A stretch of 63,675 bases of DNA, filler included, from Reticulomyxa filosa (GCA_000512085.1; 20 parts of 20 records of this genome joined end to end with filler, not necessarily neighbours in it), one strand, 5' to 3'; positions 16,598-24,372 are shown, counted from the whole stretch's first letter. The notes: generated from the letters alone by a model not told the origin. Made by a program: numbers and translations.

Positions 16598-16788
16598 NNN
16601 NNNNNNNNNNNNNNNNNNNNNNNNNNNNNNNNNNNNNNNNNTTAATTAATTAANNNNNNNNNNNNNNNNNNNNNNNNNNNNNNNNNNNNNNNNNNNNAAA
16701 AAAAAAAAACAACGCAACGGAATTATCCGGAATTTGTAAGCTGATGACGTTGATGTCTACGTGCATACAAAAATGTGTATTTGAATAG

Positions 16789-17773
16789 ATTCGATCGGCT
16801 AGTGCAATGTGGGGTGCATGAAGCGCTACTTCATTCTGGAGCTGATGTAATAACGGGGGCGGACATTGCCGCAATTGAAAAAAAAGAAGACCTTTTGTTG
16901 TTGAAATGCCAAGACAAGAGGGAGTTCAAAGGTTATGACTGCGTCATTTACGCAGTTGGCAGAGGTCCGTTGTCGACGGAACTGGGATTGGAACATACCT
17001 CTGTAAAACAAGATAAACGAGGCTTTATTATTACAAATGAATGGGAGGAAACACATCAAAAGGGAATTTATGCCTTGGGGGATGTCAACAATAAAGTCCC
17101 GCTTACACCAGTTGCCATTCGCGCTGGGAGAAAGTGGGCTGATCGCGTGTTTGGAAGCATCAAAGATGCAAAAATGGAGTACGATCTTGTTCCGTCCGTC
17201 ATTTTCAGCCATCCGCCTATTGGGACTATTGGTCTTACTGAAGAGCATGTGCGTGAACAAGTGAAAAATAAGAAATTGCCCGAACCTATCAAGGTATTTA
17301 ATTGCTTGTTTGTTCTTTTTTTTTTTTTCATTTATTTATTTAATTGACAGTTATTAAACTGCTCGCTCAATTTTGTCATTTATATAAGACCCCCTTTGCG
17401 CATTAATACTATCAATGAAAAGGGGAGGGGGCGGCGGGGTAAAAAAAAAAAGATTTATGAAACCCATTTTCGAGACTTAAAGTATGGAATGTATTCAAAT
17501 CAAAGTGAAAAAGTCATGACTCATATGAAACTAGTTTGTGTAGGAAAAGAAGAAAAGATAGTGGGTTTGCACATGATTGGTGACGGTTGTGATGAAAGCC
17601 TTCAAGGATTTGCCGTTGCAATCAAAATGGGTGCTACTAAAGAAGATTTTGACAACATCACAGCAATTCATCCAACAGCAGCTGAAGAATTAGTCACAAT
17701 CAAAGTTGCTCGTGGGGATGAAGACAATTACTCTTACAATTGTGGACCAGATCAGAAAGTAGACTTAAAATGA
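16789..17773 (+). CDS. GSR: Glutathione reductase (5' partial; intron 17294-17452)
   Basis: [77 protein letters not shown]. Confidence 0.95.
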
Positions 17774-17898
17774 AGTCGTTGATTTCTTTTTTTGAATTGT
17801 CTTGAATAAAATAATAATGTTCAATCTTTTGATCAAAAAAAGTTTTTTCCTCTCGATAAAAAATAAAGCAAAAAACAAAAAAGGCAATTTTTTATTAT

Positions 17899-19061
17899 TT
17901 AGTCAACCTCAACCTTTTTTTTCCAAATTTTATTCTTAAAAAATTCTAAGGCTGTTTCAATGGGAGCAACGGAAGAACGTCTATCCCATATAACTTCTCC
18001 TGGGTGCCCTTGGTTGAAAGTTGCAATTTTCCAAATAAATTCGCAATTAATATATCCACGCTCATCACCAGAACACAAAATAACGTTGTTAGTTGAAATT
18101 TGCATTTTCAGACCATTCTTAATGCATGCAATCGGTCCACATAAAGAAGCAGCTGACAGTTTTTTCTTAACCCTGATTTTACATTACCGATTTGGAATTG
18201 ATCTCCACATGCAAAATGGACATGTGATCGTTTCATGCGACTTAATCCACCACTCTTGATAATCAATTCAAATGTATTGAAATACGTTCCATGGCAAATG
18301 ATGTCACTCCATTGTTTTTCAATGATTTCTTCAATAGTTAAATCTCGCAGCAAACAATCAAAATCCAGTTCTACTGTCCCTTTACTTTTCAGGGAATGTC
18401 CTTGATTTGCCCGAATCCACAAGTCCTTCTTCATTTTTTCCGTCGTGGTACTAGATTCCACACATTTCAACGAATATCTTTGCTTATCATCGTTTGCCAC
18501 CATCTAAAGACAAAGATTTCATTATAACAACAATCAAAAATCAATTTTCATTTTTCCAATCATATCGTAAAGCGCTTATTATATATGTATACGTAATACA
18601 TGTATATAACACAAAAGTGCAAGAAAGGAAAAAAAAAGAAGAGAACTAACATTTTGGATATCTTCCAAAGTGACCTGCCCTTTTTGCATAGCTGGAATAG
18701 TAAGTAATTCAGACACTCTTACATACCCTTCCTTGTCCATGTGAAGTTTTAACTTGTCTGCAGTGTGTCTAAGAATGCGGGACGTGGTTTTGCTCAATTG
18801 TATACCTTGCAACTTGCGTTGTTTCTGGCCTGCATTTTTGTTCGATTTTGGTTGTTTAGGAGTTTTAGAATAATCTTGCTTCTTTTGACTAGATTGTTTT
18901 TTCTTTGTTTGATTTTCCTTGTGCTCATCATGACTGAGAAGTTCCAAATACGACAATGGTAAGGTATTGTTATTATTCTCATTTTTATTATTGCCGCCAA
19001 TCGCCTGAATTTGTCGTTCGCAAATTAATTGCTTTTCTTTCGAATCACGATTCCAAATTTT
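17899..19061 (-). CDS. TPT1: Tpt1/KptA RNA 2'-phosphotransferase domain (C-terminal half of a NUDIX-Tpt1 fusion); intron 18504-18651; -1 break at about 18121-18135
   Basis: LSKTTSRILRH, DDKQRYSL, IRANQGHS, CHGT, GLSRMKRSHVHF, SGLR, STNNVILCSG. There is no in-frame ATG upstream of the LSK..RH motif. Confidence 0.9.
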
Positions 19062-19915
19062 TCATACGCTTGACAGAGCGCATCTTTTGTATTTTCGTAT
19101 CGAGCCGGAATATATTTTTGACATTCCTTAAATGCCAGCCATTGGACAGCCGCAATTTCCTTAGGACGTATAATTGAAGGGATGCACTTTTCATTGCAAT
19201 GTGCCAAAAATATTGTCGTCCGTTTTAACTTCAGAGTTTTGTAGGTTTTATATTTGTACTCGATTATCAATGGGTCGTGCCAATCACAGGTTATCACATC
19301 TTTGAAATAATTGCATCCAGTCTCTTCTTCAAATTCACGAATTGCCGTACTAAACCCATTCGGATTTTCTGTTCTTTCCAATCTACCCTTTTTTTTTTTT
19401 TTTTTTAAATAAAAAAAAAGTAAATTTGAAAGAAGCAAAAAATTAATTAATTAATTAATTAAAAAAAACGTACTTTTGGAAATCCCCACTCCGAGTTATA
19501 CTTGTTTTTAATTAATAGAAATTCCAAATCATATTGCTGAGTGATCTCATTTACATTGTATTTACTCGCTTGTGTCAAGCCTTGGACTCGATAGCATAGA
19601 AGTCCAAAAGAGTATACGTACTCTTTATACTCTATTCCTTCGCTTATTGTTTTAAATCAGTCATTTGTTCTTTTCTTGGCTGTCCCATTGCTTTAGGGCT
19701 TACTCCTTCCCATTGCTTTAACAATTGCTCTAATGCAGTGACCGAACTATTGCGCTCAGCTCCCTCACCGCTGCTTGGATCGTCGCGATTTTTTGTTTCA
19801 CGTTTTGTACTGTTTGTTGTTTGTCCGTCAATACAAATGTTTAATAACGCATTGATCGCATTTATTTGCAATACCTCAAACCATCTTCTTTAGTTTCAAC
19901 GAGATTTGCCGACAT
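19025..19915 (-). CDS. NUDIX hydrolase domain (Ap4A-hydrolase-like) with N-terminal extension; intron 19388-19473; -1 breaks at about 19647-19656 and probably about 19865-19889
   Basis: YSFGLLCYR...EFLLIK..WGFPK|GRLERTENPNGFSTAIREFEEETG (Nudix box). Confidence 0.88.
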
Positions 19916-20330
19916 TTTTATTTGTATTCAAAAGTATCAAAGGGAAAGTTTTTTGAACTTGTGGAAGTTCAGACCAATTTTTTTAAACGATAAGAAAGTC
20001 TTTGCATGTGATTTTTTCCGTTTATACTTAAAAATGGATATTTTTCCCAGAAGTTCAAAATCAAACATTGCGTTGATAAAACTCGTCCAATGTTGATCGA
20101 TAGTAAAAGGTTATAAATGTACTTAAAAAAAAAATATACGGCCTAGAAAAAAGATAATTTTCTGACATTTTTTTCTTTGCATAAGGATTAAAATGCCTTC
20201 GTTGCCAGTAAATCCTTCCAAAATAGCCGTCCATTTCCAAGATCCTTCTCAATGTGTGTGTAATTTTCATATGTTTCTGGGAAACTTGCAAAGCTCTTCG
20301 ACAAATATTTCAAAAAGTGGGAAAATTCGC

Positions 20331-21897
20331 GAAATGTGTTCAAATTTTTTTTCCTTCAATCTGTTATTTTTGGCAGTGTCGTGGCTACTAATAATTGGCC
20401 CCTTGGTGGTCTCATTAGATCTGCTTGCGATTCACTTCACAAACTGGTATTTTGACAATAATTTAGAATACTTGCAGCATACATTAATGATTTGCGTGTA
20501 CGGGTTGAATGCATATTTCATTTTGAAACATATAGTGCTGGACAAAAAGGATGCTGCCCCGAAATTGACAAAATCAAAATTAGGCCGAATATTATCTCTA
20601 GGTATGCTATCAACGGTTGCATCGCTTTTGAACCTGTTAATAACAGCGACAACATGGATAGCTCCAAACAAATGGCTTAAAGGGGGATTCCTTTGCGATT
20701 TGGTGTATTGCGAGTATATGTCATATAATTTGTATTATTTGGAGATATTTGGTCTGATTATGCCCTGTTTCATAGCATTGTTTCTCTATCAAGTCACGGA
20801 CAAATGGAGGAAGAATCGATCTGATGTTATTTTCGATGGGAATATCAATAGCACGAAAATAACGACGACACCCAATGAATTGTCAGTCTCATTGCTATCG
20901 TCCGATGTTAATGAAACGGATCAATTTGATAACCTGAACAATAACAATACACCCGTAATGTCCATTTTTTGGTATAATGTGTATGCATATTTGTGGATTT
21001 TCTTGTACGGCTTGGCCTTGTTTGTATCCTATTGCTATTCTCAAATTCAGTCTTCCTATACCAATGACCACTTTGATTTGGTGTATCTGTCACTATTATT
21101 TGCCATGTTTACATTAAAATTGGCCATCAAAAGAGTCTCACGAGGCTTGGATATGTGTCGAGCACATTGGCAACACAAACATTACACTAACTCATCAGAT
21201 CCGGAACAAACATCCATTGAATTAATGACTGAGTTTATCATGTCCTATATTTATTGGGACGTATACCGATATTTGTTCATTTGCGAAAAGATCAAATGGG
21301 AAAGTTTCATTATTTCCAAAATAATGCACGTTCTTTCAGAATTATTCGAAACTGGGTATGTTTCCCCTTTTGCAATGTGTACGTATTATTTGTTTACTTT
21401 TTTTTGCAAAAAACATGCACAAAATAAAAAGATTTCGTCCAGGTAATTGGTATTTTAAAACAACAACAGTATTGCTTAACACAAGGCTGTCAAATGCCTA
21501 TTTGATACCTTATGGAATCATACAAGATGTTTACACATCAAACAATGAATGGAAGCAGCGCTTCTCAGCAGATATCATGTTGCATTTCATGGCATCGTTT
21601 TTTGATGGATTTGGCTGGATTGTTACCTTGAACGTGCAAAGACAATATTTTAACACCAGTTTAGGAATTGACGTGTCTGACTCTTTTGTCTTTTTAGTTG
21701 TGAGTATGTCCATTGATGCGATCCTTTTACTTATTCATTATATCTGGTTTTTATTCGCTTATGGCATTAATGTTACCGAGCTGGCTTCTGTTTTGTTTAT
21801 ATCCCCAAAGCAAAATAAATTTCGTTGGGATTTCATTTTGACTTTGATTTTCCTGTATTGTTCATCTGCTCTACAATGGTTGTTTTTGGGAACGTAA
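20331..21897 (+). CDS. Unknown polytopic membrane protein (intron about 21356-21431; start uncertain)
   Basis: Long hydrophobic ORFs join in frame as ETG|FRPGNW. No frame breaks. Confidence 0.75.
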
Positions 21898-22209
21898 TCT
21901 CAACAAAATATATTTATTATTTTTTTTTTGGTCAGAATTTTTATTTGAAATAAGTTATTTTTAGCGATCAGATTTTGAAATATACTTTATGTCTTCTTGA
22001 AAACAACACTGCAACTAAAAAAGACCTATCGAATAGAAATGCTGTTTTGTCCCAAAAACTAAAAATGTTCGGGACATAACAAAATAAGTCATAATAAATA
22101 ATTAAAAATAAGAACAAAAAATATCAAAAATAATAACCTAGATATTGTCCTTTTATTTGTAAAAACACAAACACAAACTCTTATCCAAAAAACATTAAGG
22201 ATTGTCAGA

Positions 22210-23221
22210 TTATTTTTGGTAGTCAGTTTTTCCCTTGTTATCATTTTTTGCTAAAGTATCAGATATCGTCTCATCATTCTTTTTTGTTCCGGTTACAACT
22301 TTTGATGAGATTTCTTTTCCACTGTTCTTTATGGAAGCCTATGCATTAACCCCTTTTTCTTTGGGAAAAGGGGGTACACAATAAAATAAAGGTTTCGCAG
22401 ATCAGTACTAAACTTGAATAAATCCTAAAAAGGGTGGCGAATTTCGTGTAGGACCTGACTTGAATTCAGGATGAAACTGGCATGCAAAATAAAAGGGGTG
22501 TTTGTCTTTTGGTAACTCGACAATTTCCATTCGTTCCCCTGATTCGTCTTTGCCAGTGAACAGTAACCCTTGACTTTCCAATTCTTTTACAAACTTTGGG
22601 TTTACTTCATACCTGTGACGATGTCGCTCAGAAATTTTGGTCTATGATCAAATTCCAAGCATCGGATACAAAAAAAAAAAAAAAAAAAGAAATTCTTGTC
22701 ATATTGTATTGTCTGTTATGAATTGGTACAAAACTGATTGATAGCAATCATAGGCAATCGAGTCCGATTGTAAATGGCATGTTTTGGCTCCCAGTCTCAT
22801 GGTACCGCCCAAATGTGAGGAAGAGATATCCGGCATACAGATTACGACCTTGTTTTGCGTCGTTGGGTCAAACTCCGCACTGTTGGCATTCTTTAGATTA
22901 CATATGTGTCGAGCGTATTCAATAACTGCGCACTGCATGCCAAGACAAATGCCAAAAAACGGTTTTTTATGAGTACGAGCATATTCGATCGCAAGGATCT
23001 TTCCCTCGATGCCCCGATCGCCAAACCCTCCTGGTATCAATATTCCGTCCACACTTTCCAAGCTTTTCCAAGCCCTCGCGTATTTTTGCAAAGGTCCATT
23101 GTCATTTTCCTCTTTGTTTTCCTCGCTTTCTTCTTTTGTCTCTGTTTCCGTCTTAGTCTCGGTCTCAGCCTTGGTGGTCGCTTATGTGTATTGTGATATA
23201 TATTTTGAATCAATAGCCCTC

Positions 23222-23257
<36 letters not shown>

Positions 23258-24090
23258 TTAGTATATTAACAAGACGCCTCTGTCCCTCCTCTTTCCAATT
23301 ACCAATGCAACATAGAGATGGAGAGAACATTTTTTACTTGAGGATATCTCTTTGGTCTTTTCAGGATGTTCGTTGGTGAGTTCCTTCGATGGGTCTGTGA
23401 TCAGGTCGCCATCGGTCGGCACAATTGGTAAAGACTCCAAATCCGTGCTTTCGATCCACATAAGAGTCAATTTCAAATCACAGGCCAATGCTGCAGTGGT
23501 CAATGCTTTTGTCAAGCTGATATAGCTATCGGACAAGCCTAGCACACAACCATCAATTTGTCATAATCATTATAATTTCTTTTTTTTTTTTAAAAAAAAA
23601 AAGGGGGTCGATAAAAAGAGAGAGAGAGAGAGAGACCAGTGTATTTGCCAACAATTCCAATGACAACTTCTTCGTGACAATGCTGAAGTTTAAAGTCTAA
23701 TAAATCAAAGTCTTGTACTTGCAGCGGAGGAGTGGCATCATGAATATGCAGGGACTGCAAGATCAACGAACAAATGTTTTGTTGCAGCAGCAGACGTGGG
23801 ACGGCGTAAATGTTCGGGACGTCATGGACACTGAGCACACGGTCAGGCGGCACCATGCTAAACAGTGAGATTTTTTTACGAATGCTCGCGCTGATGGGCT
23901 GCGTGCTTCGACAAACAATCATATCGGGGATCAGTCCCGCCTCTCGCAATGCCTTCACACTGTGTTGTGTCGGCTTCGACTTCATCTCGCCGTCCGCTCC
24001 CAACGCCGGGATTAGTGAAACATGAATCAAACAAAAGTGTTGAGAGCCCACGTCAAACTTCAATTGTCGCAATGTTTCTAAAAATATCAT
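22210..24090 (-). CDS. CTPS: CTP synthase (5' partial, six exons seen)
   Basis: [69 protein letters not shown]. All exons join by GT-AG in frame. Confidence 0.97.
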
Positions 24091-24226
24091 GCTTTCAATA
24101 TCACCTTTATATATGTATATTACATATCTATATATTTATATATATAAATATTTGCACAATATTTACATACAGAGACGACACAAAGTATACATAAAAGTGT
24201 ATATATTTTTTTCCCTCTTGGCAGCC

Positions 24227-24260
<34 letters not shown>

Positions 24261-24372
24261 CCCCCCCCCCCCNNNNNNNNNNNNNNNNNNNNNNNNNNNN
24301 NNNNNNNNNNNNNNNNTTAATTAATTAANNNNNNNNNNNNNNNNNNNNNNNNNNNNNNNNNNNNNNNNNNNN

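Follow-up and report, generated by a model that had tools for sequence, protein, structure and literature searches.

Enzymes of the Tpt1/KptA family (PF01885), such as yeast Tpt1 (7YW4), TRPT1 (7YW2/7YW3), and CthTpt1, share a two-lobe order, an HGT motif, an SGxR-K motif, and the tetrad Arg-His-Arg-Arg (R18, H19, R68, and R121 in CthTpt1; PMC6333775). In CthTpt1, Arg139 together with Arg121 and Arg140 cages the phosphates of nicotinamide adenine dinucleotide (NAD), and the equivalent R137A mutant of RslTpt1 fails at low NAD (PMC6333775). KptA can also be fused to a Nudix domain. For example, Bodo saltans virus carries such a fusion, and its Nudix domain has been suggested to process KptA's derivative of adenosine diphosphate (ADP)-ribose (PMC9503650). 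In a search of the ESM Atlas, we found clusters of NUDIX/Tpt1 fusions in Myxococcota, so the domain architecture and its likely logic are already known. Here we describe RFI_19877, a gene on the minus strand of contig ASPP01016607.1 of the foraminifer Reticulomyxa filosa (GCA_000512085.1). It has the tetrad, the HGT and SGxR-K motifs, and the two-lobe order, but unlike known members of the family, it has a one-base break of the frame ahead of the final strands of the NAD lobe. The whole stretch of DNA that we analyzed (the window) is 63,675 nucleotides of this genome, with 20 records joined by filler. ASPP01016607.1 is 7,575 bp and occupies 16698-24272, so that a window coordinate is the contig coordinate plus 16697.

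Changes of reading frame within a gene are well known from two systems. Euplotes-type frameshifting is +1 and takes place at AAA-TAA or AAA-TAG, and classical -1 frameshifting uses an X_XXY_YYZ heptamer with a pseudoknot. Like both of these, RFI_19877 shows several frame changes in the same direction in an otherwise conserved gene (we number them as sites 1 to 4, in the order of transcription). Unlike in Euplotes, the direction is -1, and the shift at site 4 is at least 8 nucleotides upstream of the stop codon. Unlike in classical -1 frameshifting, the breaks have no slippery heptamer, no downstream structure, and no common motif.

We think it most likely that the DNA record is short of a single base at each of the breaks, and that this is not a new way of reading genes. 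The deficit at 18125-18118, in the NAD lobe, would probably be accompanied by similar ones at 19061-19028 and 19656-19647. We lean, at just short of an even chance, towards these deletions being genuine in the genome, in which case RFI_19877 would be either a pseudogene of very recent origin or an allele or copy that is defective. GenBank already has an annotation for this locus, and the model, ETO17444.1 (552 amino acids), turns every frame break into an intron. If the lesions are real, the model would mask them as short GT-AG introns.

A one-base break in the Tpt1 domain

We translated the minus strand in three frames and searched all three with a Tpt1 profile that we built from 41 Tpt1 homologs. 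The features of the Tpt1 part are as follows:

18651-19027, minus strand: low-complexity linker and the RNA lobe of Tpt1, in frame 1, with the Arg-His of the tetrad at 18770-18765
18504-18650, minus strand: homology-anchored intron of 147 nucleotides with a G+C content (GC) of 25 %; the flanking exons meet at Tpt1 profile positions 60 and 59
18111-18503, minus strand: Tpt1 core, in frame 1, which runs into the TGA at 18110-18108
18118-18125, minus strand: site 4, where the frame breaks by one base (GCATTAAG), with ..HAL in frame 1 and IKNG in frame 0
17899-18123, minus strand: C-terminal strands of the NAD lobe and a C-terminal extension, in frame 0, with the stop codon at 17901-17899; the extension is shared with the relative P0050

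Frame 1 covers profile positions 4-60 and 59-167, and frame 0 picks up at positions 163-203. At site 4, the two open reading frames (ORFs) overlap from 18183 to 18111, and homology narrows the break to 18125-18118. A preliminary description of this DNA had placed the last break upstream of the TGA at 18110-18108, with no room for an intron and without the stop-triggered mechanism of Euplotes. We agree: because both frames align to profile positions 163-167, and do so at the same residue index (618-622), there is no gap for an intron to fill. By homology, site 4 is proven to be a true one-base break (-1, i.e., one base missing) in conserved coding sequence.

Frame 0 is open for 73 codons past site 4 (the chance of this is about 0.002 at this composition), and its translation is 51 % identical to P0050 over 63 amino acids, including the C-terminal extension that is peculiar to these two proteins. 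P0050 (..YVDAIQAIKDGVRFQISTNNVIL..) and P0054 (..YVDIVQCIKDGIKFYISSNNVVL..), which are the two closest relatives, are continuous through the position of site 4, and so is P0195. When we built a read-through protein with an X at the break, the profile found a single domain of 204 bits (positions 4-203). The intact relatives score 196-213 bits (212.7 bits for P0050 and 196 bits for P0054), the truncated product scores 166 bits, and the GenBank model scores 162 bits, split over two pieces that leave out profile positions 140-165.

The GenBank model bridges site 4 with its intron 6, which is 18182-18118. This segment codes for VKSGLRKNCQLLLYVDRLHAL(K), which is conserved in P0050 and P0054, and 22 conserved residues are lost from the model. 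Because these 65 nucleotides encode residues that are conserved in relatives, we consider that "intron 6" is an annotation device and not an intron. To judge from an alignment to the SGMR of yeast and from the spacing to the tetrad Arg121, the arginine that is lost with it probably corresponds to Arg139 of CthTpt1. We also rejected a 23-nucleotide intron at site 4, which would remove conserved residues and would be far shorter than the anchored introns of this contig (at least 76 nucleotides), as well as readthrough or reassignment of the stop codon, given that homology carries on in a different frame.

All of the catalytic residues are present. Pfam's PTS_2-RNA (PF01885) matches two pieces of frame 1 with 50.1 and 92.7 bits (the cut-off is 26). 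The Arg-His-Arg-Arg tetrad is complete and at invariant columns (LRH at 18770-18765, the KQR of KQRY at 18479-18477, and the MKR of MKRSHVHF at 18230-18228), and the NAD-phosphate arginine of the SGLRK motif is at 18167-18165. As previously described, the motifs LRH, KQRY, RANQGHS, HGT, and RSHVHF are intact, and the -1 frame restores KNGLKMQISTNNVIL. The NAD lobe is not complete in any one frame: the deposited ORF ends at the TGA and lacks profile positions 166-203. Translation would end there as well, giving a product without the last strands of the NAD lobe.

There was no second R. filosa Tpt1 among 1.84 billion representatives. A metagenome scan with the Tpt1 alignment gave 80 loci, none of them above about 40 % identity, and no closer ortholog.

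The NUDIX domain and its fusion to Tpt1

Upstream of the linker, the gene encodes a NUDIX domain in two exons:

19474-19656, minus strand: N-terminal half of the NUDIX domain, in frame 0 (YVYSFGLLCYR...EWGFPK), which aligns to residues 52-92 of P0054
19388-19473, minus strand: homology-anchored intron of 86 nucleotides with a GC of 10.5 % and an A18 run, which joins GFPK to GRLERTEN
19028-19387, minus strand: NUDIX box (REFEEETG) and C-terminal part of the domain, in frame 2, which ends at the TAA at 19027-19025

The Pfam match (PF00293, in 19387-19028) is 21.7 bits, with a cut-off of 21.1, and against solved structures the NUDIX piece from the window reaches only E 0.27. The NUDIX part of P0054 has Chlamydia CT771 and Ap4A hydrolases as its nearest solved structures (E 2.5e-8). 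As compared to the Nudix box consensus, GX5EX7REUXEEXGU, REFEEETG is present, and the spacing from the G to the RE is 15 residues instead of 13 (17 in P0054).

P0054 is from an ENA metagenome contig (ERZ893790, uncultured eukaryote-like) and is one uninterrupted ORF of 527 amino acids, with NUDIX and then Tpt1. Each of the two domains can be aligned to the window (E 2e-20 for the NUDIX parts and E 1e-32 for Tpt1), and the Nudix box is lengthened in both proteins. From these alignments, we conclude that the NUDIX-Tpt1 fusion is real, as the preliminary description had it, and that the product of RFI_19877 is a fusion of a NUDIX domain, probably Ap4A-hydrolase-like, with Tpt1/KptA. It had also been pointed out that neither the NUDIX frame (open from 19656, YVYSFGLL) nor the first Tpt1 frame (open from 19061, SRILRH) has an ATG ahead of its motifs, and this is correct. 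We considered two separate genes, with NUDIX followed by Tpt1, and rejected them: the Tpt1 frame has no ATG from 19061 to the RH motif, and P0054 has the fusion as a single ORF.

RFI_19877 shares its two domains in one polypeptide with P0054 and with the viral and bacterial KptA-Nudix fusions. P0054 also has the NUDIX-first order and the lengthened Nudix box of RFI_19877. The fusions from Myxococcota are about 335 amino acids and lack the long linker of RFI_19877. Unlike in known Tpt1/KptA proteins, the Tpt1 domain of RFI_19877 lies behind a NUDIX domain and a long linker that is rich in Lys, Asn, and Gln, and its C-terminal extension is shared only with P0050. Among the KptA-Nudix fusions that we considered, the frame is broken only in the R. 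filosa copy. A word-index search with P0054 found no further fusions, and none of ten more long Tpt1 relatives has a NUDIX domain.

We propose that the product of RFI_19877, now or in the recent past, is an RNA-repair enzyme of two domains, with a NUDIX domain, a low-complexity linker, and a complete Tpt1/KptA domain. The Tpt1 part is predicted to be an NAD-dependent RNA 2'-phosphotransferase, and if it works as has been suggested for other KptA-Nudix fusions, its NUDIX partner would degrade the ADP-ribose-type product of the Tpt1 reaction.

Other combinations of domains were seen among the nearest Tpt1 relatives. Several (P0051, P0052, and P0060) have two tandem Tpt1 domains in one protein, and fusions to an RNase_T exonuclease domain (P0090) and to an R3H domain (P0116) occur as well. 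In these uncultured eukaryote-like sequences, Tpt1 is often fused to other domains.

The upstream frame changes and the GenBank model

The preliminary description had counted three or four single-base insertions that would be needed to repair the gene. As it claimed, the frames overlap at 19889-19865, 19656-19647, and 19061-19028 (besides site 4), and all four frame changes are -1, with one base missing at each. Its count holds up for site 4, where homology proves the break. Sites 1-3 are unanchored, and each of them could be bridged by a GT-AG intron with a length of 3n+2, though such introns would be atypical. The features upstream of the Tpt1 domain that bear on these sites are:

17899-20068, minus strand: GenBank gene RFI_19877 (ETO17444.1, UniRef X6MUG2, hypothetical protein, 552 amino acids)
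19875-19915, minus strand: candidate first exon with an uncertain start (ATG at 19915-19913, MSANLVETKEDGL...) and no homology anchor
19865-19889, minus strand: site 1, overlap of frames 2 and 1, bridgeable by GT-AG introns at 19874-19810 (65 nucleotides) or, in GenBank, at 19958-19885 (74 nucleotides)
19657-19810, minus strand: open segment in frame 1 upstream of NUDIX, with up to 61 % GC and with ATGs near 19683 and 19659
19647-19656, minus strand: site 2, overlap of frames 1 and 0, GATTTAAAACAATAAG; either one base is missing, or there is an intron with its donor at 19703 (GTAAGC) or at 19722 (GenBank, 80 nucleotides)
19028-19061, minus strand: site 3, overlap of frames 2 and 1 in the Lys-rich linker; a one-base deficit, or a GT-AG intron of 44 nucleotides at 19048-19005 (GenBank)

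Sites 1-3 lack a homology anchor: P0054 aligns only from YVYSFG on, and the linker between the domains is of low complexity. As GT-AG pairs of the right length are available at each of them, introns are formally possible there. A 17-nucleotide intron at site 3 was rejected, given that the anchored introns on the contig are at least 76 nucleotides. Also, site 1 may be irrelevant if translation starts further downstream. The start codon in GenBank is the ATG at 20068, and an alternative candidate is the ATG at 19915-19913. For the open segment at 19657-19810, we found no homolog. Within it, there is a local peak in GC (up to 61 %, at window 19740-19790, minus strand) in a genome region that is around 35 % GC.

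Exact spliced mapping of ETO17444.1 (which is also included in EukProt) onto the window gave six GT-AG introns and an open frame of 552 codons. The model keeps the locus's own stop codon and most of the exons. Its introns are:

19958-19885, minus strand: GenBank intron 1, 74 nucleotides
19722-19643, minus strand: GenBank intron 2, 80 nucleotides
19469-19369, minus strand: GenBank intron 3, 101 nucleotides
19048-19005, minus strand: GenBank intron 4, 44 nucleotides
18650-18504, minus strand: GenBank intron 5, 147 nucleotides
18182-18118, minus strand: GenBank intron 6, 65 nucleotides, GC 38.5 %, bridging site 4

Intron 3 is misplaced, because P0054 supports the junction GFPK|GRLERTEN (intron 19473-19388). 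As annotated, it cuts the seven residues GRLERTE from the Nudix box, and P0054 keeps these residues. So, by comparison with P0054, the public protein is wrong at the Nudix box as well. Furthermore, R. filosa genes have on average 2 introns, as compared to the 6 in this model (PMC13746701).

To see what a real intron looks like, we used the seven homology-anchored introns on the contig: two from RFI_19877, one from RFI_19878 (checked against its paralog), one from the reductase gene, and three from the CTP synthase gene. They are 76-159 nucleotides long, their GC is 10.5-31.4 %, and each has a run of 8-25 As or Ts. For the four breaks, there are six candidate introns, which have 44-80 nucleotides, a GC of 29.7-38.5 %, and a longest run of at most 6, and the exons here have a GC of 34-38 %. 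At sites 2 and 3, the candidates have a GC of 34-38 % (again at 44-80 nucleotides) and A/T runs of at most 4. With just seven reference introns to compare to, the candidates at sites 1-3 are outside of the anchored range in length, GC, and A/T runs. We think that sites 2 and 3 are about twice as likely to be breaks as introns, a judgment drawn from these seven reference introns. Short annotated introns with exon-like GC may flag hidden frame breaks elsewhere in the annotation of R. filosa.

Four genes lie on ASPP01016607.1: a glutathione-reductase fragment (plus strand), RFI_19877 (minus strand), RFI_19878 (plus strand), and CTP synthase (minus strand). The ORF that adjoins RFI_19877 has 417 amino acids and is 100 % identical to the R. 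filosa hypothetical protein RFI_19878. This is a multi-pass membrane protein (window 20193-21897, plus strand), and its only detectable relative among 5.8 billion clusters is the R. filosa paralog RFI_39275 (39 % identity; L085:6405-8003). The contig of the paralog, L085, has only one called gene, and the model for RFI_39275 apparently translates a retained intron (LFFFFFFKFCTFFFFEMKS) where RFI_19878 has a 76-nucleotide intron.

Lesion, draft error, or recoding

Are the deletions real? If they are, then they would be too recent to have eroded any motif. The preliminary description took the intact motifs to imply purifying selection, and here we disagree: a lesion that is a few mutations old, or a one-base error in the draft, leaves every motif intact too, so this is not proof of selection for a recoded product. 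Loss of Tpt1 is tolerable in some lineages, as it is dispensable in E. coli and in mouse (PMC6333775). The competing explanation that we take most seriously, and that we consider plausible without quite expecting it, is that the gene is intact and that a base has been dropped from the consensus at 18125-18118 (AA in place of AAA, or A in place of AA). One more base may be missing in the A-runs at each of sites 3 and 2, and the other frame changes would be ordinary introns. In the draft assembly, which is highly fragmented, there are 50,809 scaffolds with an N50 of 3,609 (PMC13746701). Each break is beside a short A-run, and every break is a deletion, as would be expected from undercalled homopolymers. 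The gene is otherwise flawless: it scores as high as intact relatives with the profile, its correct frames are free of premature stops, and 73 codons are open past the break. It is also the only Tpt1 in the assembled proteome. On the other hand, the three neighboring genes (about 1,340 codons and 5 anchored introns, or 4 kilobases of coding sequence on the same contig) need no frameshift, and the run at site 4 is only 2-3 bases, which is not an error-prone context. To us, these two observations make random error less likely than a cause specific to the gene. The exon-like composition of sites 2 and 3 suggests that they are breaks too, and in that case three deficits in 1.6 kilobases beside none in 4 kilobases would be unlikely at random and would point to a gene-specific cause. 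That all of the deficits are deletions fits the usual mutational bias as well. Several points count against a genuine lesion. There are no in-frame stops and there is no loss of profile score, hence no positive sign of decay. A pseudogene would mean the loss of the only assembled copy of Tpt1 in R. filosa. Only one break is anchored by homology, and if sites 1-3 are real introns, a single error is as likely as a lesion. Finally, a consensus error in such a fragmented draft would look the same as a real lesion in the deposited sequence.

Two further explanations would keep the deposited sequence and have the gene work as it stands. Programmed recoding would give a full-length NUDIX-Tpt1 if the frame were restored three or four times, whether by ribosomes that shift by -1, by slippage in transcription, or by editing that inserts bases. 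There are up to four breaks in one direction with all catalytic residues intact, and the pattern is specific to this gene, as the neighboring genes are unbroken. Yet no overlap zone contains an X_XXY_YYZ heptamer in the right phase. The only in-phase heptamer is A_AAA_AAC at 18165-18159 (minus strand), around 35 nucleotides upstream of the break, and it is not the shift point, because the old frame goes on to encode about 12 conserved residues after it. Downstream of sites 3 and 4, the predicted folds match shuffled sequences in stability (minimum free energy z 0.15-0.6), no homopolymer at any break is long enough for slippage, and the stop contexts of the four sites have no common motif. The shift is not conserved either, as P0050, P0195, and P0054 are continuous at site 4. 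We therefore doubt recoding strongly. The broader idea that Reticulomyxa, and perhaps its relatives, restore the frames of nuclear genes at the level of RNA or the ribosome at non-slippery sites, with RFI_19877 giving a full-length product and a second example in the contigs L003 and L004 (described below), seems slightly more improbable still. We give the least credence to the GenBank model, which would require six spliceosomal introns, including the 65-nucleotide one at 18182-18118, and a Tpt1 variant of 552 amino acids without 22 residues of the NAD lobe. Its six introns are all GT-AG and in a suitable length class (the mean annotated intron length in the R. filosa genome is 87 bp; PMC13746701), and they leave an open frame of 552 codons. 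But the 65-nucleotide segment is exon-like in composition, and the 21 residues that it encodes agree with both the family profile and P0050/P0054. Its removal costs 42 bits, splits the domain, and drops the probable equivalent of Arg139 of CthTpt1, and intron 3 deletes a part of the Nudix box that is kept in P0054.

The contigs L003 and L004 are of interest in their own right. They are mRNA-like JGI contigs (samples 3300030741 and 3300030624) that carry the closest Tpt1 relative, P0050/P0195 (54 % identity). In both (L003:60-520 and L004:20-480), an upstream ORF of 146 amino acids with an MJ1316 RNA-end-recognition domain is offset by +1 from the Tpt1 ORF and overlaps it by about 140 nucleotides. 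The frames cross at an A9-G-A10 tract, and the two contigs are identical there, even though they are from different samples. This may be a fusion by poly-A slippage, a pair of overlapping ORFs, or a miscounted run of As. For recoding in RFI_19877, the comparison cuts both ways: the Tpt1 frame of its closest relative is also offset from the ORF of an upstream domain, but the offset in L003 is +1 instead of -1.

If the breaks are lesions or errors, then the public protein ETO17444.1 / X6MUG2 is mis-modelled, because the gene predictor made short introns out of frame breaks, and it is missing an NAD-binding strand from Tpt1 and a piece of the Nudix box. Intron counts may be inflated by this artefact in other parts of the foraminiferal proteome too, which is widely reused. 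Only if the frame is truly restored would RFI_19877 be a notable case of recoding in Rhizaria. The NUDIX-KptA fusion, which was known from a giant virus and from Myxococcota, is also present in a free-living eukaryote. By analogy, its presence in R. filosa would fit a role of the Nudix domain in clearing the ADP-ribose product that arises when the 2'-phosphate is removed from RNA.

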